Assembly: GCA_051294905.1 (NCBI GenBank) | Contig: CM119380.1 | Coordinates: 1,860,001-1,924,000 of the forward strand | Length of the DNA stretch: 64,000 nt | Source of the DNA: Botryllus schlosseri | Taxonomy: Eukaryota | Direction of reading: 5' to 3' | Notes under the pieces: model-generated | Database searches by the model: none | Seen by the model: only the letters and a program-made list of their open reading frames with translations | Told to the model about the DNA's origin: nothing | Part shown: piece by piece, positions 11,385 to 40,744 of the stretch | Layout: each line of letters begins with the position of its first letter | How positions within the stretch are numbered: position 1 is the stretch's first letter | Position numbers and translations under genes: made by a program

Positions 11385-14300
11385 TCGGACATGGTGTCTT
11401 GGGCGTGTTAGGCCTGTGTTGACACTAGGACATCGTGTCTGGAGCGTGTTCGGACATCATGTCCAGGGTGTGTTCGGCCTGTGTTGCCAATCAGACATCG
11501 TGTCTGGGGCGTGTTCGGTCTGTGTTGTCATTCAGACATGGTGTCTTGGGCGTGTTCGGCCTGTGTTGATACTCGGACATCGTGTCTGGCGCGTGTTCGG
11601 ATATTATGTCTGGGTCGAGATCGGCCATTCAAACATGGTGTCTGGGTTGTGTCCGGACTGAGTTGACACTCGGACATTGTGTCTGCGGCGAGTTCGGACA
11701 TCATGTCTGGGACGTTTTCGGACTGGATGTGGGATGTGTGTTCGGACTGGGTTACCACTGGGGAATCGTGCCTGGTACTACAACTGACCTCATAGTGAAT
11801 ATATAGCAACTATCCTCATTTCAAACATGACTATCCTCATTTCAAACATGAGACTAACCTTATTTCAAACATGACTATCCTTATATCAAACATGACTATC
11901 CTTATTTCCAAAATGATTATCCTTATTTCGAACACGAGACTGACCTTATTTCAAACATGACTAACCTTATTAACATCGTGTCTGGGGGGTGTTGGGACTG
12001 TGTTGCCAATCGCACATCGTGTCTGGGGCATGTTCCGGCATCATATCTGGGTTGTGTTCGGCCTGTGCTGCCATTCAGACATTATATTATGTCTGGGGCG
12101 TGTCGGCCTGTGTTGACACTCGGACATCGTGTCTGCGGCGAGTTCGGACATCATGTCTGGGGCGTGTTCGGCCTGAGCTATTGCCATTCAAACATAGTGT
12201 CTGGGGCGTGATCGGTCTGTGTTGCCATTCGGACATGGTGTCTTGGGCGTGTTCGGCCTGTGTTGATACTCGGACATCGTGTCTGAGGCGTGTTTGGACA
12301 TCATGTCTGGGGTGTGTTCGGCCTGTGCTGCCAATCAGACATGGTGTCTTGGGCGTGTTCGGCCTGTGTTGATACTCGGACATCGTGTCTGGCGCGTGTT
12401 TGGACATCATGTCTGGGGTGTGTTCGGCCTGTGCTGTCAATCGGACATCATGTCTGGGGCGTGTTCGGCCATTCAAACATGGTATCTCGGATGTGTTCAG
12501 ACTGAGTTGACACTCGGACATTGTGTCTGGGGCGTGCTCGGTCTGTGTTGTCATTCAGACATGGTGTCTTGGGCGAGTTATGCCTGTATTGACACTCGGA
12601 CATCGTGTCTGGCGCGTGTTTGGACATCATGTCTGGGGTGTGTTCGGCCTGTGCTGTCAATCGGACATCATGTCTGGGGCATGTTCGGCCATTCAAATGT
12701 GGTGTCTGGGTTGTGTTCGGACTGAGTTGACACTCGGATATCGTGTCTGGGGCGTGTTCGGTCTGTGTTGCCAGTCGAGCATGATGTCTTGGGCGTGTTC
12801 GGCCTATGTTGATACTCGGACATCGTTTCTGGGGCGTGTTTGGACATCATGTATGGGGTGTGTTTGGCCTGTGTTGCCACTCGGACATGGTCTCTTGGGC
12901 GTGTTCGGCCTGTGTTGATACCCGGACATCGTGTCTGGGGCGTGTTTGTACATCATGTCTGGGCAGTGTTCGGCCTGTGCTGCCAATCGGACATCGTGTC
13001 TGGGGCATGTTCGGCCATTCAAACATGGTGTCTGGGTTGTTTTCGGATCTGAGTTGACACTAGGACATCGTGTCTGGGGCGTGTTCGGTCTGTGTTGCCA
13101 TTCAGACATGGTGTCTTGGGCGAGTTAGGCCTGTATTGACACTCGGACATCGTGTCTGGCGCATGTTTGGACATCATGTCAGGGGTGTGTTCGGCCTGTG
13201 CTGCCAATCGGACATCGTGTCTGGGGCGTGTTTGGACATTATGTCTGGGGTGTGTTCGGCCTGTGCTGCCAATGGGACATCGTGTCTGGGGTGTGTTCTG
13301 ACATCATGTCTGGGATGTGTTCGGACTGGGTTACCACTGGGAAGTCGTGCCTGGTACTACAACTGACCTCATAGTGAATATATAGCAACTATCCTCATTT
13401 CAAACATGAGTATTCTCATTTCTAACATGACTATCCTCATTTAAAACATGAGACTATCCTTATATCAAATATGACTATCCTTATTTCTAATATGATTACC
13501 CTTATTTCAAACACGAGACTGACCTTATTTCAAACATGACTAACCTTATTAACATCGTGTCTGGGGGGTGTTGGGACTGTGTTGCCAATCGCACATCGTG
13601 TCTGGGGCATGTTCCGACATCATATCTGGGTTGTGTTCGGCCTGTGCTGCCATTCAGACATTATGTCTGGGGCGTGTCGGCCTGTGTTGACACTCGGACA
13701 TCGTGTCTGCGGCGAGTTCGGAATCGGACATCATGTCTGGGGCGTGTTCGGCCTGTGCTATTGCCATTCAAACATGGTGTCTGGGGCGTGCTCGGTCTGT
13801 GTTGTCATTCAGACATGGTGTCTTGGGCGAGTAAGGCCTGTATTGACACTCGGACATCGTGTCTGGCGCGTGTTTGGACATCATGTCAGGGGTGTGTTCG
13901 GCCTGTGCTGCCAATCGGACATCGTGTCTGGGGCGTGTTTGGACATCATGTCTGGGGTGTGTTCGGCCTGTGCTGTCAATCGGACATCGTGTCTGGGGCA
14001 TGTTCGGCCCTTCAAACATCGTGTCTGGGTTGTGTTCGGACTGAGTTGACACTCGGATATCGTGTCTTGGGCGTGTTCGGTCTGTGTTGCCATTCGAGCA
14101 TGATGTCTTGGGCGTGTTCGGCCTATATTGATACTCGGACATCGTTTCTGGGGCGTGTTTGGACATCATGTCTGGGGTGTGTTCAGCCTGTGTTGCCACT
14201 CGGACATGGTCTCTTGGGCGTGTTCGGCCTGTGTTGATACCCGGACATCGTGTCTGGGGCGTGTTTGGACATCATGTCTGGGCAGTGTTCGGCCTGTGCT

Positions 14301-16060
14301 GCCAATCGGACATCGTGTCTGGGGCATGTTCGGCCATTCAAACATGGTGTCTGGGTTGTTTTCGGATCTGAGTTGACACTAGGACATCGTGTCTGGGGCG
14401 TGTTCGGTCTGTGTTGCCATTCAGACATGGTGTCTTGGGCGAGTTAGGCCTGTATTGACACTCGGACATCGTGTCTGGCGCGTGTTTGGACATCATGTCA
14501 GGGGTGTGTTCGGCCTGTGCTGCCAATCGGACATCGTGTCTGGGGCGTGTTTGGACATTATGTCTGGGGTGTGTTCGGCCTGTGCTGCCAATGGGACATC
14601 GTGTCTGGGGTGTGTTCTGACATCATGTCTGGGATGTGTTCGGACTGGGTTACCACTGGGAAGTCGTGCCTGGTACTACAACTGACCTCATAGTGAATAT
14701 ATAGCAACTATCCTCATTTCAAACATGAGTATTCTCATTTCTAACATGACTATCCTCATTTAAAACATGAGACTATCCTTATATCAAATATGACTATCCT
14801 TATTTCTAATATGATTACCCTTATTTCAAACACGAGACTGACCTTATTTCAAACATGACTAACCTTATTAACATCGTGTCTGGGGGGTGTTGGGACTGTG
14901 TTGCCAATCGCACATCGTGTCTGGGGCATGTTCCGACATCATATCTGGGTTGTGTTCGGCCTGTGCTGCCATTCAGACATTATGTCTGGGGCGTGTCGGC
15001 CTGTGTTGACACTCGGACATCGTGTCTGCGGCGAGTTCGGAATCGGACATCATGTCTGGGGCGTGTTCGGCCTGTGCTATTGCCATTCAAACATGGTGTC
15101 TGGGGCGTGCTCGGTCTGTGTTGTCATTCAGACATGGTGTCTTGGGCGAGTAAGGCCTGTATTGACACTCGGACATCGTGTCTGGCGCGTGTTTGGACAT
15201 CATGTCAGGGGTGTGTTCGGCCTGTGCTGCCAATCGGACATCGTGTCTGGGGCGTGTTTGGACATCATGTCTGGGGTGTGTTCGGCCTGTGCTGTCAATC
15301 GGACATCGTGTCTGTGGCATGTTCGGCCCTTCAAACATCGTGTCTGGGTTGTGTTCGGACTGAGTTGACACTCGGATATCGTGTCTTGGGCGTGTTCGGT
15401 CTGTGTTGCCATTCGAGCATGATGTCTTGGGCGTGTTCGGCCTATATTGATGCTCGGACATCGTTTCTGGGGCGTGTTTGGACATCATGTCTGGGGTGTG
15501 TTCAGCCTGTGTCGCCACTCGGACATGGTCTCTTGGGCGTGTTCGGCCTGTGTTGATACCCGGACATCGTGTCTGGGGCGTGTTTGGACATCATGTCTGG
15601 GCAGTGTTCGGCCTGTGCTGCCAATCGGACATCGTGTCTGGGGCATGTTCGGCCATTCAAACATGGTGTCTGGGTTGTTTTCGGATCTGAGTTGACACTA
15701 GGACATCGTGTCTGGGGCGTGTTCGGTCTGTGTTGCCATTCAGACATGGTGTCTTGGGCGAGTTAGGCCTGTATTGACACTCGGACATCGTGTCTGGCGC
15801 GTGTTTGGACATCATGTCAGGGGTGTGTTCGGCCTGTGCTGCCAATCGGACATCTTGTCTGGGGCGTGTTTGGACATCATGTCTGGGGTGTGTTCGGCCT
15901 GTGCTGCCAATGGGACATCGTGTCTGGGGTGTGTTCTGACTGGGTTACCACTGGGAAGTCGTGCCTGGTACTGCAACTGACGTTATAGTGAATATAGCGA
16001 CTATCCTCATTTCAAACATGAGACTAACCTCATTTCAAACAAAGTTGACCTTATTTCAAA
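11385..16060. repeat. GC-rich complex satellite with higher-order blocks
   Basis: Motifs cggacatcgtgtctggggcgtgtt and cggcctgtgttgccaat are repeated throughout. The block marker gggttaccactggg occurs at 11749, 13328, 14647 and 15942, each followed by AT-rich ctatcctYatttcaaacatga repeats. Confidence 0.95.
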
Positions 16061-17177
16061 CCAATCGATCCAACCTTCCTCAAATGATACGCATGTAGGC
16101 TATATTCGAAAGCATGTCGAATAAGGTATTTGTATTGAAATAAACTCGAATAAGGTATTTGTATTGAAATAAACTCGAATATCTTCGGTCGACACTCGTA
16201 AAGAGAATCATTTCTGCTCACCTGATATATCAGGCAAAACGTACCGGGATTCCGATCCGGCTAGCAGTAACTGCAGAGTTTGGCCAAGAAAGTGTAGTGG
16301 AGGACTCAAGTGGAGCAATAATTGCCAGAAAAGAAAGTATGAACGGGAAAATAGAACTGTCGCTTGAAACGTCATTACGAAACCAAACAACAGAACTATT
16401 ATAATTGCTGACGTCTGAAACTGACGATCACCCATTCACCCCTGACGAGACCAAAGGGAAGACTGAAGTGGTCCTGGCGGAATTTCGGCAGAATATTTGT
16501 GATCACGTGAAACAATATTTTCGCGAACGCAGAATATTAACCCTCAACCGATGTACGGCAAATGTCATATTTCAGACTGGATGCGAAAGTGTACCTGACC
16601 TATAATTTAGATAATTAACACATCATTGGAAAGAGCGTTCAAATTACTTTATTTAAAATCGATTTCTAGATTCCAGATCGTCCTGCTTCATTCTCTCGGT
16701 GAACGTCGTAGCGATAGGACGTGCCTTCAGCGCGATCATTACGTTTGCGAATTAGTCCGGAGAAAGCCTTTGTAATTAGTTCTAGGGGCATTCGTCTCGC
16801 CTTACAGCGATACTGTTTGTCCATTGCTATAGTTGTAGCCAGACGTTCTAAGATGAGCGGATCTGGCGGGCATAAGCGCCCAGCTAGTGAGGAAGCCGAA
16901 GGTCCTGCAACAAAAGGTAGGAGTAGCGGATCTGTTATCCTCTGCCCGGATGACACCTCGGTAGTTATTTCAGGAATCGCTAAACCTCTGCGACGGTACA
17001 ATCCGATTACTATCAATCGCAGTTTAGTGCGAGTCATAGGAGGTTCGTACAAGGGGATTAAGGTCCTTCCCTCGGGAAACCTTTGTGTAGTTTGTTCTAA
17101 CTCAAATCAGGTGACGAAACTCTTGGCGTGCACCGATCTTGGTGAGGGGAAAATTAAAATTGAAATCAAGGCAGAGC

Positions 17178-20100
17178 CAGTGGCGGCTCGTGACAATATC
17201 GGGTGGTGGGGCAAGGGCTGCAAGCGACTTTTTATCAAGATGACGTCACAATGACGTTTTCCAACGTAAACAAGTAACTTAATGATGTTACGGTAACATG
17301 AATTTCCCGACAACAGTGATTTTAACGTATGTGCCACGAGAGGTCTGCCGGTGAGCTGTGACTTGAAGTGTGGTAACTGCGTAAACGGCGTACGGAACAA
17401 AGATTCAACGCGGTTCATGTTCGCACTAGACCTGACTAATTATCTGCAGAAATGGAAATGACTATAACTCGAGAGATTGCGTAAGCCTAATTGGAAAGGT
17501 CAACGAGTTCGGACACATACCCAATTGTTATCTCATACATTGGGCCTGTCATATTGAATCCAAAACAGCATTCTGAAGAACCAAGAATAGCAGTCTCGGA
17601 AACTCGGTCTCGGTACAGCATAGGAGATTTTGGCCTTGAAACTGGAGACTGTAACACGACACATATGGTTTTATTACTGTCTATAGGTCTGCTGCGAAAT
17701 CGCCTTTGGAAAATATATTACCGAATATATACGTGGGTGAAAGCCGTACACTGTTACATGACATCATCGAGAAGTAGCCTCATGGCCAGGCCGTGTTATT
17801 TTTGGCATTTCAGGAGCCAGATGCCAAAACTGCCAAAAATAAAAAATTGAAAATGCCAAAAATAAGCAATTTTGGCATATGCCAAAAATAACACGGCCTG
17901 CCAAATAGTGTATTTCGTTCATGGTGTTGTGTTAACAGGACCGCGTTACAACCGAGAAGAGCGTTTTTGAAAGGCAGGTTTCTTAATCTGGGTCAAGCCC
18001 ACCCATTAGGGGTGAAAGCATGGTGTCCTAAATGGTGTGGGCACAGCGAGATTGAACGGCTGACTGCATTTGGCTTTACGTCATACTTTCCATTTGTCCA
18101 AAGGCAATTATAAGACCACTTTTTACCGGCTTGTCGAGCGCTAAATTTGATAAAACGGGTATCAATGAGAAGCTGCCGCAGTACTGCTTATTAAAATATA
18201 AATTATATTCTGCTAATAGAACTGGAACCCCCAAAATCAACCACGATTTTTGCATTGTGATCGAGTTGAACATTGTGAGGCAACAAACTGTCTGGCTATT
18301 TCTGAGCTGCATAGTCTCGTTTTGCCAGACAGTCTTGTTGCGTCAATGTTCTTAAACAAGCTAACCTTCCCAGGACTTTTCCATGCGAGTTGGTACTATT
18401 AAAGCCACCTGAAGTGACAAAAGTCCTCCGTATCGGTAGACTGAAGGAGAAATGATAGTCGGGCTACTAAATAGAATGTGTTGAGAGACAACACAGGACA
18501 CTCCTGGAAAAGGATCGGGAAGAAAATCCTTTCCGCGATGAGATCGATTGCACTGGCGAAGTGATCTCTTTTCATGATGCATGGAAGCCGGCTCGGCCCT
18601 CCAAAGATTTTGAAGCTCTGAGAACCATTTGTGGATGACTGCCAACATTATTTCCCTCAACGGCTACTGTTGAAGCCGATATTTCACAGATTCGCTAGGC
18701 GAGAAATGAATTTAGGAGAAACTTAGCTGACCTGAGTTTGGAAGCACTGTTACAGTGCAAACGATTTAAGTCTATTCAACAGCTGTAACAATCAGCTGTT
18801 GAGCGTGTTTGTTAGGCTTTTCTTTCTTTTTTTGCTTATTGGCACCGATTCCGATGGATACTGCACATTTTGTGGTTTCGTTTGATATTATTAACCTATG
18901 AAATCGTTAGGTTTTTTTCTTCTTCTTATTGTTTGTTGGCGCTGATTATACGTGGATGCTGCACATTTTGTGGTGTCTTTTGACAAACTAGCCCAAATAA
19001 AGCGTTTTTGTGACTAATTCGAGGCTGAAACTATCTATTTAGAGGACGATGCCCAAACTGCCAAAAATAAAAATCGAAAAATGCCAAAAATAAGTTATTT
19101 TTGGCAGTTTTGGCATATGCCAAAAATAACACGGCCTGCTCATGGCCCTTTTCGGTATGGTACACTGTCAAAATAATGCAAACAGACCGAATTTTGCGTA
19201 AAATTTACTGAGGAATAGGCTGATCAAGTGATCAGCTGTTAGCCGACATCGAAAACAAAATAGCTATCGCGCTTGACAGGGGGTTGTAAGCAAATGGCTT
19301 GAAGGCCCCAATTTCACGGTGAAATTGACATTGGAGAATATAATATCAAAGTAAATATTTGAATGCAAATGAGAATGATATCATCATCTCGTCACCTATC
19401 TCAGTATGGAACACAGTTAACGTTACCACAGATACACCGGCTTTTGCGTGAAATCCGCAATGCGTTGTAGGCTAAAGTGTCAGATCTGAGCACATCTCTA
19501 CCATATTCGACCTTGATAACGAAATTACTGCCCTAATCATTGAGTGTCAACCTTGAGACTTGGCACAGCGTTCGATACTAAAATCAAAACACACCGTGCA
19601 AAATCTCATGACAGATCTAGGTAAGGAGCATCGTTAAAATCAATAGAGACCAATACCGGCTTTGCGTAAAATCTGTTAGCGATAAATGACGAGTCAGCTC
19701 TCACTCGACTTAGGAAACGAAATTACCGCTAACATAGTTCAGTGACAAACTTAAAACTTGGTACAGCGTTCGATACTAACATTAAGACTTACCGTGCCAA
19801 ATGTCATAACCGATCTCAGTATTGAACATCGTCAAAATCAATGGATACCAATACCGGCTTTCGAGTAAAATCTGTTTGCGATACATGACGGATCAGCACA
19901 CACTCAACTTCGGAAACGGATTTACTACCCTAAACTTTAAGTAGAAACCCTGAAACTTGGGGCAATGTTAAATACCACCATCACGACATGACATACCAAG
20001 TTTCAAGAGTTTTCATGGTGTGAAACACCATCAAAATCGACCTATAATAGCAAAGGTCGACTAAACGCATATGACGGTAACCGAGTTCAGATATAGATAC

Positions 20101-20479
20101 GATTGTTACATCACACCTTAGGTGCACAGACCTATTGAGCCACGGTTGCTCGGTAATTTTATGAATAGGAGAGAGTAAATCACCGTTTCTTTATTGTGCG
20201 CGGCTTTGAGAGAATAGACAGTCAAAGCTTGTTATGAGCGCAACCGGGGCAAGCCCCGGCTAGGTATTCGCAAAGCGAAAACACAGAAGAGGATTCGATT
20301 TTCGCAGAGACTTCGCTATATATGGGCATTTACAAGCGAAAGGACAAGAAGAATACGATTTTCGCTGTGATTTCGGTATATATAGATTGTTGTGCGTCTA
20401 TAAATGGTAAAGAATTGTTATTGAACAGAATTTTAGGTGGGGCAATGCCCCAGTTGCCCTATAGGACGAGCCGCCACTG
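17178..20479 (-). mobile_element. hAT family A, copy 2 (internally deleted, non-autonomous), inserted in LINE ORF1
   Basis: Perfect 14-bp TIR cagtggcggctcgt/acgagccgccactg; 8-bp TSD ggcagagc (17170-17177, 20480-20487). Only about the first 14 transposase codons (MNRVESLFRTPF) remain. Confidence 0.95.
17787..19138 (+). mobile_element. hAT family B composite non-autonomous element nested in family A copy 2
   Basis: Perfect 22-bp TIR caggccgtgttatttttggcat; TSD ctcatggc (17779-17786, 19139-19146). Relic hAT C-terminal dimerisation motif FPSTATVEADISQIR*ARNEFRRNLADLSLEALLQCK near 18650-18780. Confidence 0.95.
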
Positions 20480-20830
20480 GGCAGAGCTATATCGTAGTAA
20501 ACCATTGGAAAGTCGGGGCGTCATATCGGATGTTCCTATCGATCTATCCGACCAGGAAATACTTGAAGCTCTTGAAAACTCTCGTGTCACGTTCGTGCGT
20601 CGCTTTCCGTATCGTGGTGTTAAAGGCCTAACGAAGAGTACCTCTGTTCTCTTATGTTTTGCGTCTCCCACTCTACCAACTGTGGTTCAAATAGGTTTTC
20701 TTCGATTCCGGACCAGTTTCTATAATCCGCCACCCACTCGGTGTTTCAATTGTAACCGTTTCGGGCACAAAGCTAAGTATTGCAGGAGCGCACAGAGATG
20801 TACGAAATGTGGAAACAGACATACATACGA

Positions 20831-21939
20831 TAGGGTTGCCATACGTCCGGAATTTCCCGGACATGTCCGGAATTTCACTGAAAAATCTGCGTCCGGGAGG
20901 AATTTCTAAAATATGCCTAAATGTCCGGAATTTTGAAGGCTTCAAGCAGGCTCAATTTTTTTTCGTAAATCAACATAAACAGTATTATTTTCAAGCAGAT
21001 TTACGCTATTCCAAATTTTTCTTCGCGCTGCGCGCGAGTTAATGTAACGTATGATTTTATTGGTATGAGCACCTGGCACTATACTCCCGCCGAAAATGCA
21101 ATCAAAATAAATGTAAATAACCATCACTTACTGAAATAAATCTGTTTGTAACCGCAACGCAATTATAAGATATAACGGTATATTCCTAGAGTTGTTTAAG
21201 GTCGATTGGATGCATCGGTCACAGACAGAGGGGTTCCAAATCTTGCGGTCGTTCGCCTTTATCTGATGTTGGACGTAATCGGCTTCCTAGGCCGTTAGCT
21301 AAGTTTGGGCAAGCTGAATTTTTTAGTAATCCGCTTATCAAGTCTTGAGCTTTGTCACGGAACATTTTCAAATGGGAAATGAGGTCGCGACCATAAAAGG
21401 CTGGAAATCACCGGATGTGCAACCTGTTGGTGCATTTTACAATGGCATAATATACGGAAGAATCAATGTTATTGAGAGAATTCATGCATAAAATTTAACA
21501 GCCAAATGCATATAGTAAGTGCCCAACAAGTAACATCGAATACCCTATGGTGGCCCCAAGATCAGTGCTTTTTTGGATGGAAGGGGGGGGGATGTAAAAA
21601 TGTTCTTTCGGACCTGATTAAAACACTAGAACAGATAACCGCACCAACCGCAGGGCTCTCAAACACAATCCTGACAGGCCAGACACGGCCCGCCAGATGA
21701 TATCATCCGGCCCGTATAGGAATCTATTGTAGACCCTAGCAAGTATAGCAATCACCAGATCTCACATTACAGATGGCCCAATGCTCCACTCCATGCCTGT
21801 ATAGTGTATACATTCGATGGTCAATGGTTTGCTATTGTGACGTCATATTGACGGACAATGTGGCACACCTCATTTTAAAATCCGCTAGTGGGCGCTAAAG
21901 AGTGTCCGGAATTTGCTTCACAAAAATATGGTAACCCTA
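20831..21939. mobile_element. hAT non-autonomous element in LINE ORF1
   Basis: TIR tagggttgccata/tatggtaacccta (1 mismatch); TSD acatacga (20823-20830, 21940-21947); tccggaat subterminal repeats. Confidence 0.93.
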
Positions 21940-22230
21940 ACATACGACAATTGTAATAGTGAACTACAATGTGTCAATTGTGGCTTAGCCCACTCCGCGG
22001 GATATGCGGGATGCTCCCGGTTTAAGAAAGAGGCGCGAATTCAATCTATTATGGCTAATGATAAGTTAAATTATTGGGACGCGCGTAAATTGGAAGAACA
22101 AAACACCGCCCCTAAAGAAGCGGTAGTTGCTGAGACACGATCAGAAAGCTCTGTACGTCTGAACACAGAGGCGCATACATCTACAGAACGAGCGTCGAAG
22201 CCCGTTGCGGAATCGAACGCCGTCCCCATG

Positions 22231-24294
22231 CACTGTAAAAAATAAAAACCTTGATTTACCGCGAAATGTTTGGAAGCACGGTAGCCAGACATTTCGCGGT
22301 AATCTAACATTACCGTTAGTCAATGTAAACTTAACTTACACTCGTCCGGTAATCTCACTTTACACGCCAGACTGTAATGTTACAGTCACCTCCGGTATAT
22401 CTAATCTACATGTTCTCCTGTTGATTTGCGATCGATACTGTCATTTTACCGCCTACCTACCTACATGCTATGCTGTCCCTGTAAATCAGGATTACATACC
22501 AGCTTGTAAATTCACGTACATCCATACCTATCGCAAAGCAACCCACCCGATGCAAAAATATCGCAACATTTTCTTCACATCCCCAAAACGACATTGGAAC
22601 AAACTGTATATTCATTCATGATATCACGATGAAGTGGTTATCGATGGAAAGATATTGCTGCTGGAGGTCTAATTCTTCTTTAGGAGACATGCAGTAACAC
22701 GAGTGGTCTCAAGAAAACGTGAATTAATTCCACCACCGGCCAAACTTCCAATTGTTTCTTTTTCTCGTTCTCATTCCTTCTGTGTAAGTAGTATCTTGCA
22801 GTTCCACTAAAAAGAATTCATGCGTAAGTCGCTATATAAAGCAAAGTTCCTAACCTGGATAGTGGACATGACATTATAAAGACTAAGACAAATAGGCTAA
22901 CAAAAATATAACATGTTTTGAAGTACCGGTACTGGCACATTGTGTGATGACGGCTCCGCCTTTTACACGACATAGCAGAGATTCATGACTTTATCTCTGT
23001 ATTGAAGCAAAAGGTTCCCAATTTAAGGTGGCATGTGTGGCAAACAAATCCAGCACTGGATGAAAACATATCTATGCTATGGCCCGAAAATGACATTACC
23101 AAGCCAACAGTTTCAACTCCTCCGCAGCGGAGTATGTGGTCACTATATAAGTCGACAAATATCCCAAAATAGAACAGAGAATGCGGCGAATGAAATATAT
23201 CAATCATGAAATCTAAGTCATCGAGGGCTGGTGTGCAGAGTCAGATATTCACGGTAACAAATACTATGTAGTACTATATTACCTTTTAAGATGCGTATTC
23301 CATTCAGCATTCCTAGGAATCTTCAACGATCGTGTCCACTTTCTTCAAGCACAACAAGCTTCGCTCCACCCATTGCTCAAATCTCACTAATGGAATGGCC
23401 ACTGGTCAGACGACACTCGAACGATTTCGAAATAAATGGTATTCATCCGCTGACACATGACACCAATAATATTTACTGGCCACGTTATAATGTTTGATCT
23501 GGGTCGTTTTTTCCAAACAGAAACATTTATCATTGCATATAGTCCCTTTTTTCATCTAATTTCGTATAAATTGATATATATTCCATGTGTTGTTCACTAC
23601 TTACTGTACTTTCCTAACCAGACGCTGCTTGTGATGTCACAGTTGTGCGTTGGTTGTTTACTACGAATCTCAGAAAAAGCAGTCACCTAATGTAACCTAT
23701 TACAGGTCGCCTTGTCCGCCATTAACAAATGGTCAGCTGAGCATGCGGTGCTGATATTTCTAGTTTCCCCGAGCAATATTATACATCCTGAACTAATTTT
23801 CTAACTTATCAGCCTTATCCGTGACAACGAATGTAGCCAGCGAGACTGGCCGTACAGCCATTGCCTTATAATATAATATGGCTACGGTGTACCACATTAG
23901 CTACGATTGTCAGTTATTTCTTGTACCCTACTAAGCTTAAATTGATACTAGGGCCAACAATTACGGTATGACAGACCACAGTCTCGCAAACGAGGTTCAA
24001 TCAGGTCAAATCACCTCTAGAATGATATATCAGTAACATTCAGTTCTGCGTATACATTGGCTGCAGCGATTTTGAAGCTAATCAATTTTACCAATAGCCC
24101 GGTAAAGTGCAGTAACGAGTAACTGTCAGTAATTTTGCGAAGAAATTCTGGTAACTTACTTTACAGCTATATTAAGGTAATATTACATATCAAAATGTAA
24201 AATGACAAGCTACGCACAGTAATTGGCTGCGACCGGTAATTCGTGGTAAAATTTACAGAGATTTCCCATTAAATCTACCAGATTTTTTACAGTG
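22231..24294. mobile_element. CACTA/EnSpm-type non-autonomous element in LINE ORF1
   Basis: Perfect TIR cactgtaaaaaa/ttttttacagtg with 2-bp TSD tg (22229-22230, 24295-24296). Removing it restores the ORF1 frame. Confidence 0.88.
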
Positions 24295-27200
24295 TGCATA
24301 GTATATCACAGAGCTCTGCATGCCTTGCCCAAACAAATGGTAACATAACGATCCCAACCGAATCCTTCTTCACCTTCATTGCAGAAGTGATCAAAAATAC
24401 CCTGCTTTCATTTGCGGAGAATAAGACAGTTGATATCGAATCGATCATCGTGAAGTCCGCGGGAGAAAACCTCGGTATATCCGTACCGATTCCCAGAAAA
24501 AATAACGAAGTAGCAATGGACTTATCTGCCAACAGAGCAACTACACCAAATAGGCCTACCATAGTTTCGAATGTAGAACCGGTCATCTCCATCCCTGACG
24601 TGCGACGGTTTGAGCCACATGGCTCCACCTTGGCAACACCATCTATTGCCTCTATTACCAACCCGAGCGCCATGGCAACTCACAATAGTTCATCTATTCC
24701 TGACTCCAATGTATCGAGTAACGGAACACAATGCCGATAAGAATCATGCAATGGAACTGTAGAGGGATATACCGGAAAATCCACGAATTGAAATATTACT
24801 TGAAAAATCTTGACAAAATGCCCGACATCATTGCCCTGCAGGAAACGCACCTGATCGATAAGTACACGCCCAGAATTGCGAATTACAAACTTATAAGAAA
24901 AGATCGCGACCAGACGGAGGTGGTGTCTGTATCTTTGCCAGACAAGACCTGTCTTTCTTCGAAGTCCCCGTAGACAACATTTATCCTATAGAGGCCCAGA
25001 TTATCAAATTGCACGATTTGAAAATAATGAACGTGTACATCCCACCGAATCGAGCAATTTCACACGCTCTCTTCGAGCGATGCTTTGCGCAGTGCAACTC
25101 GAGAACGATCCTTTTGGGTGACTTCAATTCTCACCATCCAATATGGAGCAGTGGCGCCATCAATACGAATGGTCGTCATCTTCATTCAATAATAGACGAT
25201 AATGACTTTGTTGTTATCAATACAACAACGCCAACTCTTATTGATATTTCCGTACCGAGTGCCACACGGACTTCACTTTTAGACCTATGCATTGCATCCA
25301 GAGATATCGCCCCGAAGATTGTGACCTCGGTGACGGACGAACTGTTGGGGAGCGACCATTTTGTTGTTATGAACGACTTGCAGTTATCCAGTCAAGGGGA
25401 TGATTTCCATTACCGATCTTGGTCCTTCAAGAAAGCCAACTGGAACGTCTTTCAAAAGCTATGTTCGCAATACTTTAAAAATCTAGACGAGATTACTATA
25501 GAAAAGATCAGCAACTCGATCATCAAAGCCGCGACCGAAAGCATACCCCTCACAAAACCTATCCAAGGAAAGAGTTCTGTCCCATGGTGGAACGAGAGTT
25601 GCTCCAAGGCGGTTCGCCGGAAACGGGCGGCCTTCTGCAAATTGAAGCGATCCTTCAGAATGGAGGCGAGCAGACGCTAGAAGGATCATACTTTCAGCCA
25701 AAAAGTCCTACTGGGATAACTTCTGTAGTTCTCTTGATCACAATTCTAAGTTGTGCCAAGTGTGGCGTGTCGTGCGATCGATTAACGGTTGCAGCAGATC
25801 CTGGAACCAGATCCGTGTACTCAATCATCTTGACAACCATCTGACTGACAGCAAGGACAAGGCCAATGCTCTCGCAAATAGTTTTGCTGAAATCAGCAGC
25901 AACAATAATTTAGATTGTCAATTCCTACATCGGCGAACTTTAATGGAAACCAATCTTTCGTTGCCCCCTGTTGAAAATAATACCCAAACACTCGGAGTGA
26001 ACGCGCCATTCAATATGGTAGAAATGAAACGTGCAATAAATAACCGCAAAAGCACTTCTCCGGGAGCGGACAGAATCTGCTATCAGATGCTGCAGCACCT
26101 GGACGAGGAAAGTCAGTTGGTCATGTTAACAGCCATCAATAACATTTGGGCAGTTGGCTCTTGTCCCGAATCGTGGCAGCATTCAATTGTTGTGCCCATA
26201 CTTAAGCAAGGTAAAGATGAAACCAAGACATCCTCGTATCGTCCTATCTCACTCACCAGCAACATGTGTAAAACAATGGAGCGGATGGTTGCAAATCGTT
26301 TAGAATGGTGGCTCACTGAAAACAATTTGTTGAACCACCATCAGAGTGGGTTTCGTCGACATAGGTCCACAAACGACTGTATTCTCGCGTTACATGACCA
26401 TGTATGTAAAGCCATTTGGACCAAGCGGTATGCCATAGCAGTTTTCCTAGATATAGAAAAGGCATACGACATGGTATGGAGAAACGGAGTCATTCTCAAG
26501 CTTCAACGTCTCGGTCTTGGAGGTAATATTCTCCATTGGTTACACTCTTTCATGGCACATAGGACGTTCCAAGTTCGCATTGGCAACACATTATCGGACG
26601 TGCATGAACTTGCGAATGGAATCGTGCAGGGAAGTGTTATTAGTCCTCTGCTTTTCTCAATAATGATGAACGACCTTCCTGACAAAATTACAACGAACAT
26701 CAATTTGTTTGCCGACGATGTCTGCATATGGGATTCTAATTTGGTCATAAACAATGTACAGAAAGATATTCAGGATTCTCTCGATACAATCAGGAAATGG
26801 TCCGACAATCAGGAAATGGTCCGAGCAATGGGGTTTCAAAATCAATATATCCAAATCTGCAGCCATAGTTTTTACGAGGCGCCGCAAAGTCCCCACGATT
26901 CGTCTTAGTCTGGGCAATTCTATTTTGCCAGTCGTAAAGGAATTCAAGTACCTGGTAATCCAATTCGATTATCGATTGAACTATCGGAGTCACGCTCGCG
27001 CAGTGACTGAGAGATGTAGTAAACGGATGAACCTGTTACGTCTTCTATCAGGGACATCTTGGGGCGCCTCGAAATCGAGCTTATTGACGCTATACAGATC
27101 TACCATACGATCAATAATCGACTATGGTTCCGAAGCATACCTACTCTCCCCAAAATACGTCATTGATAAAATACAGAAAATTCAGAATAAAGCGCTTCGC

Positions 27201-27928
27201 ATTTGTTGCGGAGGTATGAGGAGTACGCCAATACACGCATTGCAACATTCGAGTGGGGAGCCTCCCATATGGTTGCGACACTTGCAACTCTGCCTTAACT
27301 TTCGTGTCAGGATAATGGCAAATGTGAATCACCCCCACAAAGACTTGATAACTGGCTCATGGCACGAAATTTTTCCCGGCAACGACTCATTCCGAACCTT
27401 CAACATGTTAACAGGACCGGACATGTTTGAAGCGCCAATCGTCCAAAATTACGAACAACCTCCGTTGCCAACATGGTCACAGCCCAAGATCGGCGTAGAC
27501 TTACGCCTAGCTACGTTAATATCCAGAGATATCCATCCCACTTTTGCAAAACAAATCACCGAAGAATACATACACGAGCATTATGCGGGGAGCACCAGGA
27601 TTTACACCGATGGCTCGAAAAGCGCATCGGGCTGTGGTTCATGTTTCTTCGTTGAGAACAGAGACGACTGTTACAGCTACACCCTCGACGGTCACTTATC
27701 CGTCCTCTCGACAGAATTGAACGTCATTCGGAATAGTTTAGAATGGGTCAAACGCAATGGTACGCCTGAAAGTCGTGTGGCTATTTTGTCGGACAGCCAG
27801 AGTAGTCTGGTGGCGATTCGAAATTGCTCTCCGGACAACGAACTCATCGCCGATATCCTCCTCCTAGTATCGGATTTACATGCACTAGGGATCGAAATTG
27901 TTTTGGCCTGGATCCCTGGCCATAAAGG

Positions 27929-29374
27929 CAGGGGTGGGCAACATACGGCCCGCGAAGGGATTTTGTCCGGCCCGCGGACAGTTTTCCGTCTTATATGATA
28001 ATGTGGCCCGCGGCTACAGTCTGCCGAGATACCCCGCTACTTGCTTACTATGTCACATTTTAGTCACCGTATGTTATTTGTATGCGCAGCGTGCGAGTGG
28101 AGCTTGCGCGTAAGTTCGTCGAAGCGGGAAGAATTGCATTATCGGCATTTACGATGTACTCAACCCTAATATCGTTTTAGGTAATCATGTTGTTTGTAGA
28201 CTACAATGGTCATTTACACCAGACCGTAACCACTGACTTGTAGCACGGCACACTTGTAGGCTTTTGTAAGATACCGCTTAGGGGTCGCCAACTCAAAACG
28301 GGCCGCGGGCCACTTTTCAAATTTCGCAGATGCCGCAGTCCGCATGAATTTAATATCGAGATAAAATGAATACAACGACGCTATCTCATCACCTACTCAG
28401 CCGTAATGAATTGTTATATTGGTTAATTTGGGGTACCGGGCTTATTGAACGCCTTCAAATATTTATTAGGGATTGCACCGTGAGTTGATTGATCACAGCA
28501 TAGCGTTCTTTTTGGTGTGTACACAAGCAAATCTCACGGCTCAGTGAAATTGGTCTACGTCACACTTTCCCTTTGGTCAAAGGCAATTTGACGGTAATTT
28601 TTGACCGGCTTGTCGAGCATTAAAATTGATTAAACGGGTTTCAATCGAAAGCTACCGCGGTACTGATTGCGAAAATATAAATTCGAATCTGCTCGTGGCC
28701 CTGGAACCCCCCAAAATCAGCTTCGAATGTTGCATTGTAACGGAGTTTGGTATTGTGACGCAACCATGCCGTCTGGGAGCAGGTGAGGAGCAGAGTAAAC
28801 TTCAAGCGTATTGGCCATTATTGCGCAACCGATTGTGCATTCACTTCACTCTCGTGCGCGCTTGTTCCTGAGCTGCTCAGACGGCATGGCTGCGTGGGGG
28901 TTCCAGAATCTCGAGCAGAAGAGAATTTATATTTTCACAACCAGCACCGCGGTAGCTTTCGATTGATACCCGTTTTATCAAATTTAATGCTCGACAAGTC
29001 GGTCAAAAACTACCGTCAAATTGCCTTTGACCAAATGGAAAGTGTGACGTAGACCAATTTCATTGAGCCGTGAGATTTGCTGTGTCCACACCATATAGGA
29101 CACTATGATCAGAGAGAAGCAGACATGGCGGCGCCTGTATGACAATACTCTTCTCAAATCCACATTATATCCTCGTCATTATCGGCGAGAAATGGCTTTG
29201 AAGTGACATTGCTGTCGTTAAAATACATTCATTAAATACGATTTATTCCTTGTATATGTGGAATTGTGGATAAATGGGCGATAAATCGATAATGTATCGA
29301 TTCAGCAATCCGGCCCGCCAAGTACTAAACTTTCCTATATCCGGCCCGCCGACTGGAGAAGTTGCCCGCCCCTG
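27929..29374. mobile_element. hAT (Charlie-like) non-autonomous element in LINE RNase H
   Basis: TIR caggggtgggcaac/gttgcccgcccctg; flanking duplication ccataaagg (27920-27928, 29375-29383). Contains a family D left-end fragment near 28280. Confidence 0.9.
28513..29093. mobile_element. Foldback-type MITE with ~210-bp inverted arms
   Basis: tggtgtgtacaca..gcaaatctcacggctca..caaaggcaatttgacggt..ggaacccc is mirrored at about 28885-29093; no clear TSD. Confidence 0.8.
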
Positions 29375-29661
29375 CCATAAAGGTATCCGCGGCAACGAAA
29401 AAGCCGACGAAATCGCACGAAGAGCAGCACTGATGCCACTCGTGCGAGATCCAAACCTTCGGCAAAAAATTACTATGAAGGAGATGAAATCCCTCATTGC
29501 CGATATATGTCGGAAAAAGTGGATCGGCCACATAAATGCCCATGACGACGACTCGCAATATAGGAAAATTATTGGAGATATCAGGGACATTAACCCAATT
29601 ATCGATTTGTCACGCAGGGAATCTGGAATCCCAATTAGACTGCAGACTGGTCACTCTAGGC

Positions 29662-31191
29662 CAGAGGTCTCAAACTCAAATGTGCTCGCGGGCCATTTCC
29701 TAGTTTTTGATGACGCCGCGGGCCGCAGCATCAATAATCGGGATATTCAATGCATAGGTTCCAACTAGGCCTTATTTGACGGGTCCTTGCAGACATGCAC
29801 TCCACAGACATCGTGAAAATGTGATTTACTAATGCATTATTCACGCTTGACACGAAATAAAATCACATTTTCCAATATTTGAATAATTTTTTGTGCCGGG
29901 CATATTTTTTCTAACTAATAAGCTATAGATATAATATGAGACGATGCATCATGACATTGTAAAACTGTCGGGTTATATTAGTGCAGCTAGTGGACCTTTG
30001 ACGTGCCACAATTTCATGTATATATTTTAAAATATACTGAAGATTGATCTGATATCAGAGCATTTGAGCGGTGTAGCCTAATCCTGGTTTTGATAAAGTC
30101 GTGATAAATGTAGGCTATTGTTATTGTCATTGCCAAAGTCAAATTAAATCAGCGTTAGATTTTGCCTTCGATTATTATTGGAACATATCAATAACAACTT
30201 GAATATAATAATTATTGAGGCACAGTAATAGCATTTGTTCTTAGCCTTTTTAGCGATTGTACCCCTTGTGCTTCCAATGAGATTTCTCGTAGCGCCTGTC
30301 CATTTTCAACACAATTTCGGATGGCACCTATATATTAAAATCAGAAAGCCCATTCAGACAAGACTATTTCCCAGTTGAATAAATTGGCCAAGAAAATATT
30401 CCACAGCATATAGGCCTCATTCCACAATGCATCTCGGACACCCTGATGTGGTGCTTCGTACCCCGATGGGGTCTACGGACCCTGGTCAAGAACCCCTGGA
30501 ATAGAAATGTCCGAACGGCGAATAATTCATTGGTGTTACAGCTGTAGAGCGTAGTGCTACCTACCCTACTCGCCTACGACAATAACATGGACAAGAGAAC
30601 AAACAACACCCAGCATGTAACCAACTATACGTCACGGGCGTCATAGAATTCCAATGGTTGCCATACTGACCTGATTAGATAGTTATATACCCTAAGCAGC
30701 GCAAGCTACGGACCTTTTGATATATTACTATCCTCGATGACAGTTTCATAGATTGTTGCGCCCGTAGGATTAACAAGTTACCGTTTCGATTCCCAAGTCC
30801 TTGTCTGATTTTAACGTTTGATCCGACTCAACTCGAGGTCATTTTTATTTAATCCCTCAGTCTATCCAAAACCGAGTAATTTTACGAGAAGGTCGCACCA
30901 ACCAAATCACAATTTGAAGTCACGAATCATCAACGGGTCATGTTCTATCGTCATGACCTAGAAATGTGACGAAATAGCTGATCTTCTACCTCATGGTAGC
31001 TTCTAAAAGTGATGTGATAGTGAAGTTTGTTGAGATCCCACTGATTTTTATAATAGTTTCAGATTGAACTTTAAGCTATTATATCAAATAAAATATATGG
31101 CACTTGAATGTATTGTTGAATACTTGAAATTCCAAAATGCCGTCGCGGGCCGCACAAAATGCTCTCGCGGGCCGCGTGTTTGAGACCTCTG
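29662..31191 (+). mobile_element. hAT family C, copy 1, in LINE ORF2 3' part
   Basis: TIR cagaggtctcaaac/gtttgagacctctg; TSD ctctaggc (29654-29661, 31192-31199). Confidence 0.95.
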
Positions 31192-31546
31192 CTCTAGGCT
31201 GAACGGTCATCTACACAGAATTAAATGTCATCAAAATGGCCTTTGTGATGCATGCGGGATCAAAGAAACCGTCGAGCATTTCCTCCTCCATTGCCCTAAA
31301 TATGACCGTGCCAGGATCAATCTAATTCAGACTGCTGACCAAAACAGAGTACCCCTAACGCCCGAGTCCCTACTCACAGACGCACATACTATATGGCCGG
31401 TCATCGAATTCACGATTTCAAGTGGCAGAGATATATAAAGAATTGTAATTCCTTCAGATAGTACGGGAGTATTTATTGCCAGATATCGTCCTGGGGCAAA
31501 AAGCCGAGTAGCTAAGCCCCACTACCCCCCTCATACCTACCTACCT

Positions 31547-31970
31547 AGATCGTCCTGCTTAATTACGAACACGAGGACCAAAGCTACGTTATATTGCGCT
31601 GTCGGGCATTGTTGGCCGCCATTTCAATGTATGGCAAATTCCACATTTAAGGCCGGATTCAAGAGTGTACCTCACCTACAATTCAGATAATTAACTCTTC
31701 ATCGGAAAGAGCGTTCAAATTACTTTATTTAAAATCCATTTCTAGATTTCAGATCGTCCTGCTTAATTACGAACACGAGGACCAAAGCTACGTTTTATTG
31801 CGCTGTCGGGCATTGTTGGCCGCCATTTCAATGTATGGCGAATTCCACATTCAAGGGCGGATTCAAGAGTGTACCTCACCTACAATTCAGATAATCATCA
31901 TAATCATCGGAAAGAGCGTTCAAATTACTTTATGTAAAATCCATTTCTAAATTCCAGATCGTCCTGCTTA
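31547..31970. repeat. ~205-bp tandem repeat into which the LINE inserted (matching partial unit at ~16590-16688)
   Basis: agatcgtcctgctta at 31547, 31751 and 31956; the upstream flank ggaaagagcgttcaaattacttta matches the unit. Confidence 0.9.
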
Positions 31971-32039
31971 GTATCTCAGTGAGCCAAGCCACGACGAGGA
32001 TTATTTTTCTGGAATAATTCCCGTCGATAAAAAGCAAGA

Positions 32040-32560
32040 GTTGGCAGTCTCCATTTTATACTCGATATCGCAATCTTGAGAAAGAGTGCATGGATGTCAG
32101 CAACAGCAATTGATTCCGACCTGGAAAGTCAATGCGACGATAACGTTTATTACTCTCCGTCATTTTACACCAAGTTCGTTGAAGTAATCGCTAGTCGACT
32201 CGGCGTAACCTCGCGTCTTCTGCTAGGAGACTTATCAAGGCACAGTCGTCCTGAAATTCCTCCAAATCATTATATGAAATATGCAAATGGTGGAAACAAC
32301 TGAAGAAATATGCTGGGCGCTCAACCTGCGACGGTACAAGAACGCAAGGTTCAATTGAGCAATTTTTCCGGCAGTTGAAGCGAAACTATCGAAAGAACAA
32401 GCGTGCATCAAATGTACCAAAGTTCGTGTGGCACTACGAAGATGCAACGAGAGTGACTGGCAAATCGTTTGCTGATGATTTAGTGAAAGTCAAGTACGGC
32501 TCGCGACCCGTACCGAACCGGAAACTCCAAATATATCATCAAGAATAACAACCGGTAAAT
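32040..32560 (+). pseudogene. C-terminal part of a NOF-FB-like (MULE/Foldback) DDE transposase
   Basis: Frameshifted motifs SPFY, NVYYSPSF, LLLGDLSRH, RTQGSIEQFFRQLK; the last motif is the presumed catalytic Glu region. Confidence 0.6.
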
Positions 32561-32747
32561 AAAAAGCCAAAATTTCTAGAGTCGAAATTCAAGAAACGAC
32601 TCCAAATAGAAGGATATTACGGAACTCCCACGGCCGCCGAAAAAAATCAGGGATCGTAACTCAAAATCATCAACACCGTAGGGAAAATTCGCAGAAAAGT
32701 TATGGAAGTCGATACAAGAACACGCCTTATCGACTGTCGGTACGAAA

Positions 32748-34943
32748 TTGACTGACACTGCGATCAAATCGAAATTCGAAGTCGCTGTGACGTATGCTGA
32801 TATAGTGTCTGTTTGCCCCAACCCATCGGAGAAAATCATTCAAAATATCAATGAAATCATGACAACTGACACCAAACCAGGATGGTCAACATACGGTATT
32901 GTCAATGCTTTTGTAATCCAGTGTGCGCTCAACGGAAATTCTCAGTTAAATCAAAGACATTTTGGGTATCTGACAACGGACATGACTCATTTCATACTTT
33001 GTGGAAATAAACCTCGAGCAGTTCCAGACATTATCCTTGATCACAATCGGCTCTTACGCGAGGTCGTACTTTTACCAATTCTTATTCGTCGGAATTTCAA
33101 TCATTTTTCTCTTCTCTGTTTTCAAGAAAAGAATAAAATAATCACATTTTACGATTCTGCTGGTTGTCGTGATACGGAGGAGCAACACGAGATTTTATCG
33201 TCAATTACAGAATAATGAGAATACCTATCTGGTATTTCTAGAATAGATCTGAACAGCATGATGAAGGAATTTTTCGGCGACTTCCTTCAAACCGACTCTT
33301 CTTGTGGTGTTTTTGCATGTATGGCAGCGTGGAGCATATGTTTGCAAGACAAGCACCGTACACATTTGCAAACTGACTTCCGTCATAAAATCATTTGGGA
33401 GCTACGTCAAGACTGCCTGACATCATCCCACGTTGTGCGAAATGCTGAGGTTGAATGTGGCATTCTTACCCAGATACCTGGACTCGAAAATCTAGGAAAT
33501 ACATGCTGGTCCAATTCTGTTATGCTAGGAAATACATGCTGGTCCAATTCTGTTATGCAAGCATACTCTCATGTCATACGGCAGAGATTGGGGCCACTGG
33601 GTGAGAGTAGGCAAATTCACGGGGAAATCGCAAATATACTTATCCCCTTGACAAACTTGAAGGCGGTTGCACGTGACGTATTAATGAATACTGTTAGAAT
33701 TGCATGTGAGAGAACTAAACTGGAGTTTGGTAAGCAGCACAATTGTCTTGAGTTCTATTCACTATCTTCCTTGCCACAAGTATTGGAAGATATTCGTTGG
33801 AAGCACGAATTGAAATACGAGCGGATCATCCACTGCAACGACTGTCAAACGAATGGATCAACAGTACACCGAGAAAAAATCTTCAACGTGAATTGCGGAG
33901 TTGCATCGATAGCAGAAGCATTTCAGATTTCACAACTCAAATGTGAAAAATGTGATTCCGCGACAAATACTAATGTCATGCTCACTGAAATTCCGAATCC
34001 AGTGCGCCTCAACCGTGCGAATTCTATGGGTAAAAAGATGGAAAATACTGTCTTTGTCAACCGGAACCTCGACATTCAGGGACCTGATCAAGATTGGATC
34101 GGATATTCGCTCAAGGCTGTGGTTGCACACATCGGATCGGATGGAGACGGACACAATATCGCATATTCAATTCATTCGAAATGCACGGTACGGCTATGCA
34201 ACGACGAACTTGTAGAATTTGTGGATTCGAACGCAGCTTTCAATGCCATGTCAAGGAATGGATACCTCTTTATTTATCTCAGAAAGATGAAGCGAAGATT
34301 ACCGCTGCAAAAATTCTCCAAGCAAGAATATTTCATGAAAAGTCTGCCATTGAAAATGATGGATATCAATGAAGGAACTAAAGCAATCGGTGACACAATA
34401 TTTCAGGACATTGTAAATATTTGTCATCTTACATTACACGAGTCGCAAAAGGACGTCCGTAGTCAGCGACATTCCCTTTTTCTCGAAAACAAATACGCTG
34501 AATTGCAGAAAATGATCGTACCTGTTGGACAAAATGACAGCGAAGAAATCAAAGTCATATTCCAATATATCAAAAACAAGACCCGCGTCTTACATGCGAG
34601 ATGGATCAGACATTTGAACACAGGAACAGAATACGTCGCATACAACATATTTTCGCGAATAATTTTCAACAAGGCTGTGGTGCATGAGGACATTGAGCTC
34701 ATGAAGAAATTAGCACCAACGCACAGCAGCGACAAGTATTTCAAGTTGGTTGTGTTGCAAGAAGTGGCTTTGATGTTTCTGTCCATTACTGAGAAGAGAA
34801 CATACGAAGAAGTTTTGGAGAATCTGAATGTACCATATAAATGGCGAAAAAAAGCAATTACAAGTTACGTTTCTACGGCTTTCGCATCGTATTTTGAATA
34901 TACTTTTTTGTTGAAGAACTATCGAATTTCATTTCATTGGTAG
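32748..34943 (+). pseudogene. Ulp1/C48 SUMO protease followed by a USP/C19 ubiquitin-specific protease and a helical C-terminal region
   Basis: ORFs 32748-33215 and 33258-34943 share a frame (TAA TGA between them). C48: NHFSLL, FYDS, QTDSSCGVF. USP: GLENLGNTCWSNSVMQ, QHNCLEF, LKAVVAHIG..DGHNIAY, CNDELV. Confidence 0.8.
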
Positions 34944-40446: not shown

Positions 40447-40744
40447 ATTTGTGTTGCTCACTCCCAAATTGACGCCATCTGTTTAAACCAGCTTTCAGTT
40501 TCTGTCACTGCAGAAAGGACAGGAAAACCAAGGTTACGGTATCGAAGACAATTTCAACGAGGGAGGCCACGACGAGGAATATTTTTCAGACTAGATTCGT
40601 GTTTTTAGCCTATAGAAATTGTTCATTGATATATGCAACTATCAGGCTACGCAAACGCAATTATACGCAGCGACACTTGAGAGTAACGGGTGTAAAATAT
40701 TACGAAAAATGAAACTTCAAATATAAAATTGACTTACTGTAGAT

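Follow-up and report, generated by a model that had tools for sequence, protein, structure and literature searches.

A full-length LINE in the window (the 64,000-nucleotide stretch of Botryllus schlosseri DNA analyzed here) is interrupted by five elements, each with terminal inverted repeats (TIRs) and a perfect target-site duplication (TSD), at the coordinates given in an initial annotation of the sequence. Removing them in silico leaves 5371 bp in which no stop codon interrupts the coding frames. We consider the locus very probably a dead and ordinary transposon nest, in which the insertions piled up through concurrent recent DNA-transposon activity and regional tolerance, and which was noticed as an extreme case.

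Boundaries and coding content of the LINE

The non-LTR retrotransposon occupies positions 16690-31546 (+) and sits within a ~204-bp tandem repeat. It is flanked by a perfect 14-bp TSD, AGATCGTCCTGCTT, with identical left and right copies at 16676-16689 and 31547-31560. Because the unduplicated target site is present near 31750, in the neighbouring tandem-repeat unit, the AGATCGTCCTGCTT pair is a true TSD rather than an effect of the tandem repeat itself. Both ends of the LINE are intact, as had been claimed. The five insertions divide the element into six segments, all on the plus strand. Segment 1 (16690-17177) comprises the 5′ UTR (16690-16852, beginning with an initiator-like CATTCT) and the start of ORF1 (ATG at 16853). 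Segment 2 (20488-20830) encodes zinc knuckle 1 and the beginning of knuckle 2 of ORF1, and segment 3 (21948-22230) the rest of knuckle 2 and knuckle 3. Segment 4 (24297-27928) contains the C-terminus of ORF1 (stop at 24738-24740) and ORF2 from its ATG at 24731, with the AP endonuclease, the reverse transcriptase (RT) and most of the RNase H. The end of RNase H and the C-terminal region of ORF2 follow in segment 5 (29384-29661), while segment 6 (31200-31546) carries the C-terminal CCHC motif of ORF2, CDACGIKETVEHFLLHC, the stop (31436-31438) and a 3′ UTR of 108 nt ending in (TACC)n.

The joined LINE was built by excision alone, with neither frameshift repair nor a consensus. In it, ORF1 is open over the predicted 464 codons (ATG at 16853, stop at 24738-24740) and contains three CCHC zinc knuckles: CFNCNRFGHKAKYC, CTKCGNRHTYDNC (rejoined across insertion 2) and CVNCGLAHSAGYAGC. 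Pfam and database searches were run on the LINE piece by piece, not on the joined sequence. The AP endonuclease lies at the N-terminus of ORF2 (Exo_endo_phos_2, E 1e-22 on 24862-25677), where the first 60 residues from ATG 24731 align to P0002 and P0018 with 62-67% identity, and the RT domain was matched by RVT_1 (E 2e-32). Downstream of the RT, the excised sequence can be aligned to P0052 (precomputed PF00075) across the latter's RNase H region and has the motifs TDGS, E, SDS and GNEKAD, which supply the D, E, D and D residues; the Pfam RNase_H match was subthreshold (E 0.005) on the ORF2 piece that insertion 4 interrupts. No stops and exactly three frameshifts remain in ORF2 after excision, at ~24910, ~25655 and 26790-26808, in line with the 'about three' counted initially; the third consists of a perfect tandem duplication of 19 bp.

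By its domain content, the element is a full-length I-type non-LTR retrotransposon with RNase H. The domain content of I-group non-LTR retrotransposons is reportedly treated by Malik, Burke and Eickbush in 1999. Like I-group elements, the LINE has CCHC knuckles in ORF1 and an AP endonuclease, RT, RNase H and C-terminal CCHC motif in ORF2, together with overlapping ORF1 and ORF2, a TSD of the variable-length kind and a short tandem-repeat tail in place of poly(A). The RNase H-bearing I-group clades in the Repbase clade list are I, Nimb, Ingi, LOA and Tad1 (PMC4455052). The LINE has only distant relatives among database proteins: a word-based protein search with the RT piece returned 319, the best of them 49% identical. 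The names that these relatives bear at source ('jockey', for instance) were assigned automatically. Within the 64-kb window the LINE has no second copy, and the word-based protein search turned up nothing above 49% identity.

Five insertions and their probable families

Insertion 1 (17178-20479) is a non-autonomous hAT-type element with the TIR CAGTGGCGGCTCGT and the 8-bp TSD GGCAGAGC; a related copy ends at 3247. It holds a nested hAT-type element (17787-19138; TIR CAGGCCGTGTTATTTTTGGCA, 8-bp TSD CTCATGGC), whose empty site is found in a paralogue near 2090 and which has a sister copy at 57642-58898 with the TSD GATATCAG. Insertion 2 (20831-21939), also hAT-type, has the TIR TAGGGTT(G/A)CCATA and the 8-bp TSD ACATACGA, and its excision rebuilds the CTKCGNRHTYDNC knuckle. 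Insertion 3 (22231-24294) is non-autonomous, with CACTG...CAGTG termini, a 13-bp TIR (CACTGTAAAAAAT at both ends) and a 2-bp duplication, TG. Insertion 4 (27929-29374) is a composite hAT-type element with the TIR CAGGGG(T/C)GGGCAAC and a 9-bp duplication, CCATAAAGG, and within it lies a palindromic unit (28499-29106; 7/8 duplication) that was probably carried in. Insertion 5 (29662-31191) is hAT-type, with the TIR CAGAGGTCTCAAAC and the 8-bp TSD CTCTAGGC, and has a 79%-identical copy at 39008-40389. In a scan of the whole window for TIR-plus-TSD pairs, shuffled sequence yielded just 0-2 matches. The claim of five separable insertions was thus borne out, each having matching inverted termini and a flanking duplication. 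That several of them contain further nested elements was overstated, as we find one clean nested hAT and the one probable palindromic unit.

The reading frame of the LINE fixed the length of two duplications. For insertion 4, an 8-bp duplication was ruled out by the frameshift that it leaves right at the junction; removal of 9 bp fuses the last two ORF2 pieces, of 446 and 185 codons, into one of 564 codons and restores the RNase H motif WIPGHKGIRGNEKAD. For insertion 3, the frame is regained only by removing 2064+2 bp. A 3-bp duplication was rejected, since ORF1 then ends at 378 codons; moreover, symmetric ends fit only the 2-bp TG, and a 3-bp TGC needs an asymmetric 5′ end. Conserved motifs were regained across three junctions: the zinc knuckle at insertion 2, RNase H at insertion 4 and a GH...C-x2-C...H-x4-C block at insertion 5. 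The in-silico excision proposed at the outset therefore gave the in-frame ORF2 junctions expected of it, although the remaining length is 5371 rather than 5372 bp, insertion 4 requiring the 9-bp duplication. Scans for SINE-like or RNA-derived nested parts gave no tRNA or Rfam match at 16000-32500.

Assignment of the LINE-resident copies to hAT was made from their ends and TSDs only. Their TIRs and that of the nested element start with (C/T)AG (CAGTGG, TAGGGT, CAGGGG, CAGAGG, CAGGCC), and perfect 8-bp TSDs flank insertions 1, 2 and 5 as well as the nested element. Short TIRs beginning with CAG or TAG and 8-bp TSDs resemble those of non-autonomous hAT elements of the Ac/Buster/Charlie type. Two features are unlike hAT superfamily elements, namely the 9-bp duplication of insertion 4, the exception among these TSDs, and the lack of an encoded transposase in the LINE-resident copies. 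Judged by ORF length, these copies look like non-autonomous derivatives, as no long ORF is listed inside them. An autonomous-looking hAT is present in the same window, with an ORF carrying DUF4371 and a hAT-dimerisation domain.

Termini of CMC (Chapaev-Mirage-CACTA) elements are invariantly 5′-CAC...GTG-3′, and Chapaev duplicates 3-4 bp of its target (PMC4079192). Insertion 3 has the CAC...GTG ends in common with CMC; it differs in its 2-bp TSD, where 3 bp would be expected of CMC/CACTA elements, and in having no transposase remnant. Judged by ORF length, it holds nothing of a CMC transposase, since none of the ORFs wholly inside it exceeds 77 aa. The termini agree with the CACTA family named initially, while the 2-bp duplication and the missing transposase do not, and we tentatively call insertion 3 CMC/CACTA-like.

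Age of the LINE and order of events

Across the 1694 codons (5082 nt) of the excised LINE there is no stop, and the indels number only three. Zero stops in 5082 nt put substitution since the last functional ancestor at no more than ~1.6% (95% upper bound), an estimate based on ORF intactness alone; at 3% divergence, the probability of finding no stop is below 0.004. In addition, all TSD positions are identical (57/57). These figures agree with the earlier description of the LINE as young. It could be older than it appears if its frames had been kept by chance or by gene conversion from active copies while insertions accumulated over a long period, at an ordinary rate. The window copies of the inserted families differ by 6-21% from the LINE-resident copies, which is readable as age; such divergence can, however, predate the insertions, as subfamily differences. 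Gene conversion is hard to envisage across five large insertions, and with the stop-codon probability at 3% divergence and the intact TSDs also against it, we regard an older LINE as highly improbable.

Nested insertions have been used for relative dating by genome-wide defragmentation (Giordano et al. 2007, PMC1914374), and further tools of this kind are REannotate (PMC2672092) and TinT (PMC3014933). As in those cases, a younger element here splits an older one, and excision in silico rebuilds the host and orders the events. Chronologies in those studies come from thousands of interruptions, whereas the one locus studied here places only the LINE relative to its insertions. The five lie side by side, none inside another, so their mutual order does not follow from the nest. 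The clean relative chronology put forward in the initial annotation, for at least four hAT families and a CACTA family, thus reduces to the LINE preceding each insertion. The only nested pair, insertion 1 with the hAT inside it, may have entered as one composite element.

Density of insertions and origin of the nest

Insertion density is 0.93/kb inside the LINE and ~0.11/kb in the rest of the window, a ~9-fold difference (nominal binomial P 0.002-0.01) in a post hoc comparison at a single locus, within a window made entirely of transposons. At the outside rate, 0.57 insertions are expected in a 5.37-kb target, and the probability of five or more is 3e-4, or ~3 in 10,000 LINE-sized targets; by arithmetic, a few such loci are implied among the ~9,000 LINE-sized bins in 769 windows of the genome. 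Since the LINE is young, the per-time contrast between inside and outside could exceed ~9-fold. All five sites lie within either the first 1.1 kb or the final 0.65 kb of the LINE, leaving the 3632-bp middle empty (P ~0.02), a pattern unexpected under pure chance.

These figures bear on whether the LINE was a true insertion sink, as an active young element might be if its internal promoter and 3′ end were open, nucleosome-poor chromatin, or if it acted as a piRNA-cluster-like trap. hAT-type transposases favour accessible DNA. The local enrichment and the clustering at both ends speak for a sink, and TA at positions 4-5 in 3/4 direct hAT duplications suggests related target rules. However, the locus was chosen for its striking look, the post hoc statistics are weak (P ~0.002-0.02), and five different families, one of them non-hAT, would all need the same preference. 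Local hopping from neighbouring same-family copies was rejected as the source, as these are only 79-94% identical. We therefore consider a sink unlikely and do not retain that term from the initial annotation, the ~9-fold density being relative to the rest of this window only and the locus a sample of one picked after the fact. Even less probable, in our view, is the broader proposition that, in this genome, several cut-and-paste families preferentially land in LINE copies that are fresh and still active, with hits concentrated at promoter-proximal and 3′ ends. That the nest itself is an assembly artefact, with misjoined repeats mimicking a mosaic of LINE pieces and transposons, is suggested by the highly repetitive region. 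Every junction, however, is marked by an exact target duplication and by inverted termini that are complete on both sides, and excision brings back the reading frame and the conserved motifs with single-base precision, which a misjoin would not do six times. Together, these observations make a misjoin implausible, and such an origin extremely improbable.

An ordinary nest formed by concurrent transposon activity accounts best for the locus. A full-length I-type LINE would recently have inserted into the ~204-bp tandem repeat by target-primed reverse transcription, with a 14-bp duplication, in what appears to be a gene-free, transposon-saturated region; every large scanned ORF of the window with a Pfam match is transposon-derived (hAT transposases, LTR-element protease). 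Shortly afterwards, five non-autonomous cut-and-paste elements of five families (four hAT-type and one with CAC...GTG termini) would have hit the LINE independently, each making its own target duplication and one carrying a nested hAT, and three small indels would have gathered in ORF2. The density may be explained by several DNA-transposon families being active concurrently and by insertions not being purged by selection in this region. We infer that the five events were independent and that chance or regional tolerance underlies their density.

The locus reveals no new mechanism; as a transposon nest it is tidy but ordinary. If young LINEs were indeed preferred targets, DNA transposons would be frequent inactivators of young retrotransposons. 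As it stands, a LINE with at most ~1.6% decay that already holds five insertions from five DNA-transposon families is a clean worked example, and it indicates that several hAT-type families, together with one family having CAC...GTG ends, were mobile in this animal over roughly the same recent period. It can be used for dating transposon activity and for choosing families that may still be active.

The LINE, its target site and the five insertions

A perfect 14-bp direct repeat, AGATCGTCCTGCTT, marks both edges of the LINE, a non-LTR retrotransposon at 16690-31546 (+), with one copy at 16676-16689 and the other at 31547-31560. The LINE is flanked by a ~204-bp tandem repeat with units 87-95% identical, of which a partial unit at 16551-16689 resumes past the LINE at 31547-31750 and 31751-31970. 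Since the site stands unduplicated (...CAGATCGTCCTGCTTAATTACG...) in the adjacent unit, the 14-mer is a true target-site duplication of the LINE. The ~204-bp repeat comprises at least three units and adjoins a foldback-type element at 32040-34943, of which it may be a subterminal repeat array.

Five DNA transposons interrupt the LINE at exactly the positions reported by the initial annotation, each with matched inverted termini and flanking duplications: ins1 at 17178-20479 (TIR CAGTGGCGGCTCGT, duplication GGCAGAGC), ins2 at 20831-21939 (TAGGGTT(G/A)CCATA, ACATACGA), ins3 at 22231-24294 (CACTGTAAAAAAT, TG), ins4 at 27929-29374 (CAGGGG(T/C)GGGCAAC, CCATAAAGG) and ins5 at 29662-31191 (CAGAGGTCTCAAAC, CTCTAGGC). 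A window-wide scan for TIRs with 8-bp TSDs recovered ins1, ins2 and ins5, and gave 0-2 matches in shuffled sequence. By their ends and TSDs, ins1, ins2, ins4 and ins5 fit a hAT assignment. The duplication of ins4 is 9 bp, or alternatively 8 bp with one extra base; 9 bp is unusual among hAT elements. The termini of ins3 (CAC...GTG) are like those of the CMC group (PMC4079192), from which it differs in its 2-bp duplication and absent transposase, so that the CACTA label is tentative. In Repbase, such non-autonomous elements are classed solely by termini and TSD (PMC4455052). Since none of the five has a long ORF listed, none appears to encode a transposase, and tRNA and Rfam scans found no tRNA gene or Rfam family within the LINE locus.

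The duplications of ins2 (20823-20830), ins4 (27920-27928) and ins5 (29654-29661) have TA at positions 4-5 (nnnTAnnn), as does that of a hAT at 40745-41740 (40737-40744); we take this to be the Buster-type hAT target pattern. GCCTAGGC is presumably a recurrent hAT insertion site in another LINE of the B. schlosseri genome.

Two of the insertions contain further elements; none was seen in ins2, ins3 or ins5. Within ins1 lies a clean nested hAT at 17787-19138 (21-bp TIR, TSD CTCATGGC), the empty site of which is seen near 2090 in an ins1 paralogue and a sister copy of which is at 57642-58898. ins4 is a composite element: a second hAT-like end lies at 28279, and 28499-29106 is a 608-bp palindromic unit (7/8 duplication, arms 89-91% identical), which was probably brought in with ins4 and not gained in place. 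The interior of the CAGGCCGTG family (18017-18284, 57875-58146) contains sequence related to this unit.

Excision, junctions and coding content

The five elements, each with one duplication, were excised in silico with local scripts and no repairs; database and domain searches were run on the LINE pieces separately, not on the joined sequence. The excision held as initially described except for the length, which is 5371 bp with a 9-bp ins4 duplication, not 5372 bp. ORF1 was indeed open: it begins with the ATG at 16853, runs for 464 codons and stops at 24738-24740. Removal of ins3 needs the 2-bp duplication; with 3 bp, ORF1 would end at 378 codons. With 9 bp removed at ins4, pieces of 446 and 185 codons join into a single 564-codon frame, and with 8 bp the junction itself becomes a frameshift. 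The ins2, ins4 and ins5 junctions are independently confirmed by homology: across ins2, excision recreates the second zinc knuckle, CTKCGNRHTYDNC; across ins4, the RNase H motif LAWIPGHKGIRGNEKADEIA aligns without gaps to P0052, a database relative with a precomputed RNase H domain (PF00075); and ...TGHSRLNGHL...CDACGIKETVEHFLLHC, a conserved C-terminal block, is unbroken across ins5.

ORF1 carries three CCHC knuckles, and ORF2, which starts at 24731 and overlaps the ORF1 stop by 10 nt, encodes an AP endonuclease (1e-22) and an RT (2e-32), together with an RNase H that has catalytic-type motifs. At its 5' end the LINE has an initiator-like CATTCT, and a (TACC)n tail closes it 108 nt past the ORF2 stop. 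We take this architecture to be that of the I-type LINEs that bear an RNase H; over the RT piece, the closest database proteins share 49% identity. The LINE ORFs contain no in-frame stops. Besides the insertions there are three frameshifts, in agreement with the earlier count: one near 24910, one near 25655 and one at 26790-26808, the last due to a perfect 19-bp tandem duplication in the RT region (ACAATCAGGAAATGGTCCG twice, 26790-26827).

Other repeats in the window

The window is made up of transposons and satellites, including hAT transposases, an LTR-element protease, KDZ and foldback elements and a GC-rich satellite. The satellite (11400-16060; 53% GC, strongly skewed) has periods of 65, 106, 221 and 326 bp, a higher-order unit of ~1319 bp and twin 233-aa ORFs (13536-14237 and 14855-15556), the first of which was scanned and had no Pfam match. 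An 8.7-kb hAT at 48440-57100 (perfect TIR CATAGGCGCCGAAC, TSD GCCGTAGC) contains a 502-aa ORF (48750-50258, minus) with DUF4371 and a hAT dimerisation domain, and a nested 186-bp MITE (54665-54850, TSD CCTGTGAT). Within 926-3247, a longer relative of ins1 that ends at 3247 with the same TIR adjoins a partial hAT transposase (ORF 926-1705, minus, DUF4371) and may be what is left of the ins1 family's autonomous partner. LTR retroelement remnants at 43848-46014 (minus) have aspartyl protease and DUF7047 ORFs, and a 490-aa ATG-started ORF at 61003-62475 gave no Pfam match.

Age, order and density of the insertions

Stop-creating changes are 3.7% of the possible substitutions across 5082 coding nt, and with zero stops found, substitution since the last functional ancestor is at most 1.6% (95% upper bound; at 3%, the probability of no stop is 0.004). 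The duplicated target positions of the LINE and six DNA elements are identical at 57/57, an independent bound of ~2.6% divergence. The LINE is therefore young, as first proposed, and all of the insertions are younger. Window copies of the ins1, ins5 and nested-hAT families are just 79-94% identical to those in the LINE, which argues against these neighbours as donors; this level of identity must stem for the most part from subfamily divergence or old neighbours and not from the age of the insertions in the LINE.

The initial annotation also read the locus as an insertion sink that gives a clean relative chronology of transposon families, and both readings go beyond the evidence. The LINE holds five insertions per 5.37 kb (0.93 per kb), against four top-level elements with TIRs and 8-bp TSDs per ~38 kb of target outside it (0.11 per kb; binomial P 0.002-0.01), and the insertions, at LINE positions 488, 831, 1114, 4746 and 5024, leave an empty 3632-bp middle (P about 0.02). 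These figures for density and clustering are suggestive of a sink, but both tests are post hoc on a single locus picked for its striking look. At the outside rate, five or more insertions in a LINE-sized target have a probability of 3e-4; by our own arithmetic the 769 windows of the genome with scan annotations hold roughly 9,000 such targets, so that chance would be expected to yield a few loci of this kind. As for chronology, the established method of dating by nesting requires many loci (PMC1914374, PMC2672092, PMC3014933). Because the five insertions lie side by side, not nested in one another, the order is limited to the LINE before each insertion, and the nested hAT may have arrived together with ins1. 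The overall observation was accurate with small corrections, and the locus is an ordinary, well-preserved transposon nest.
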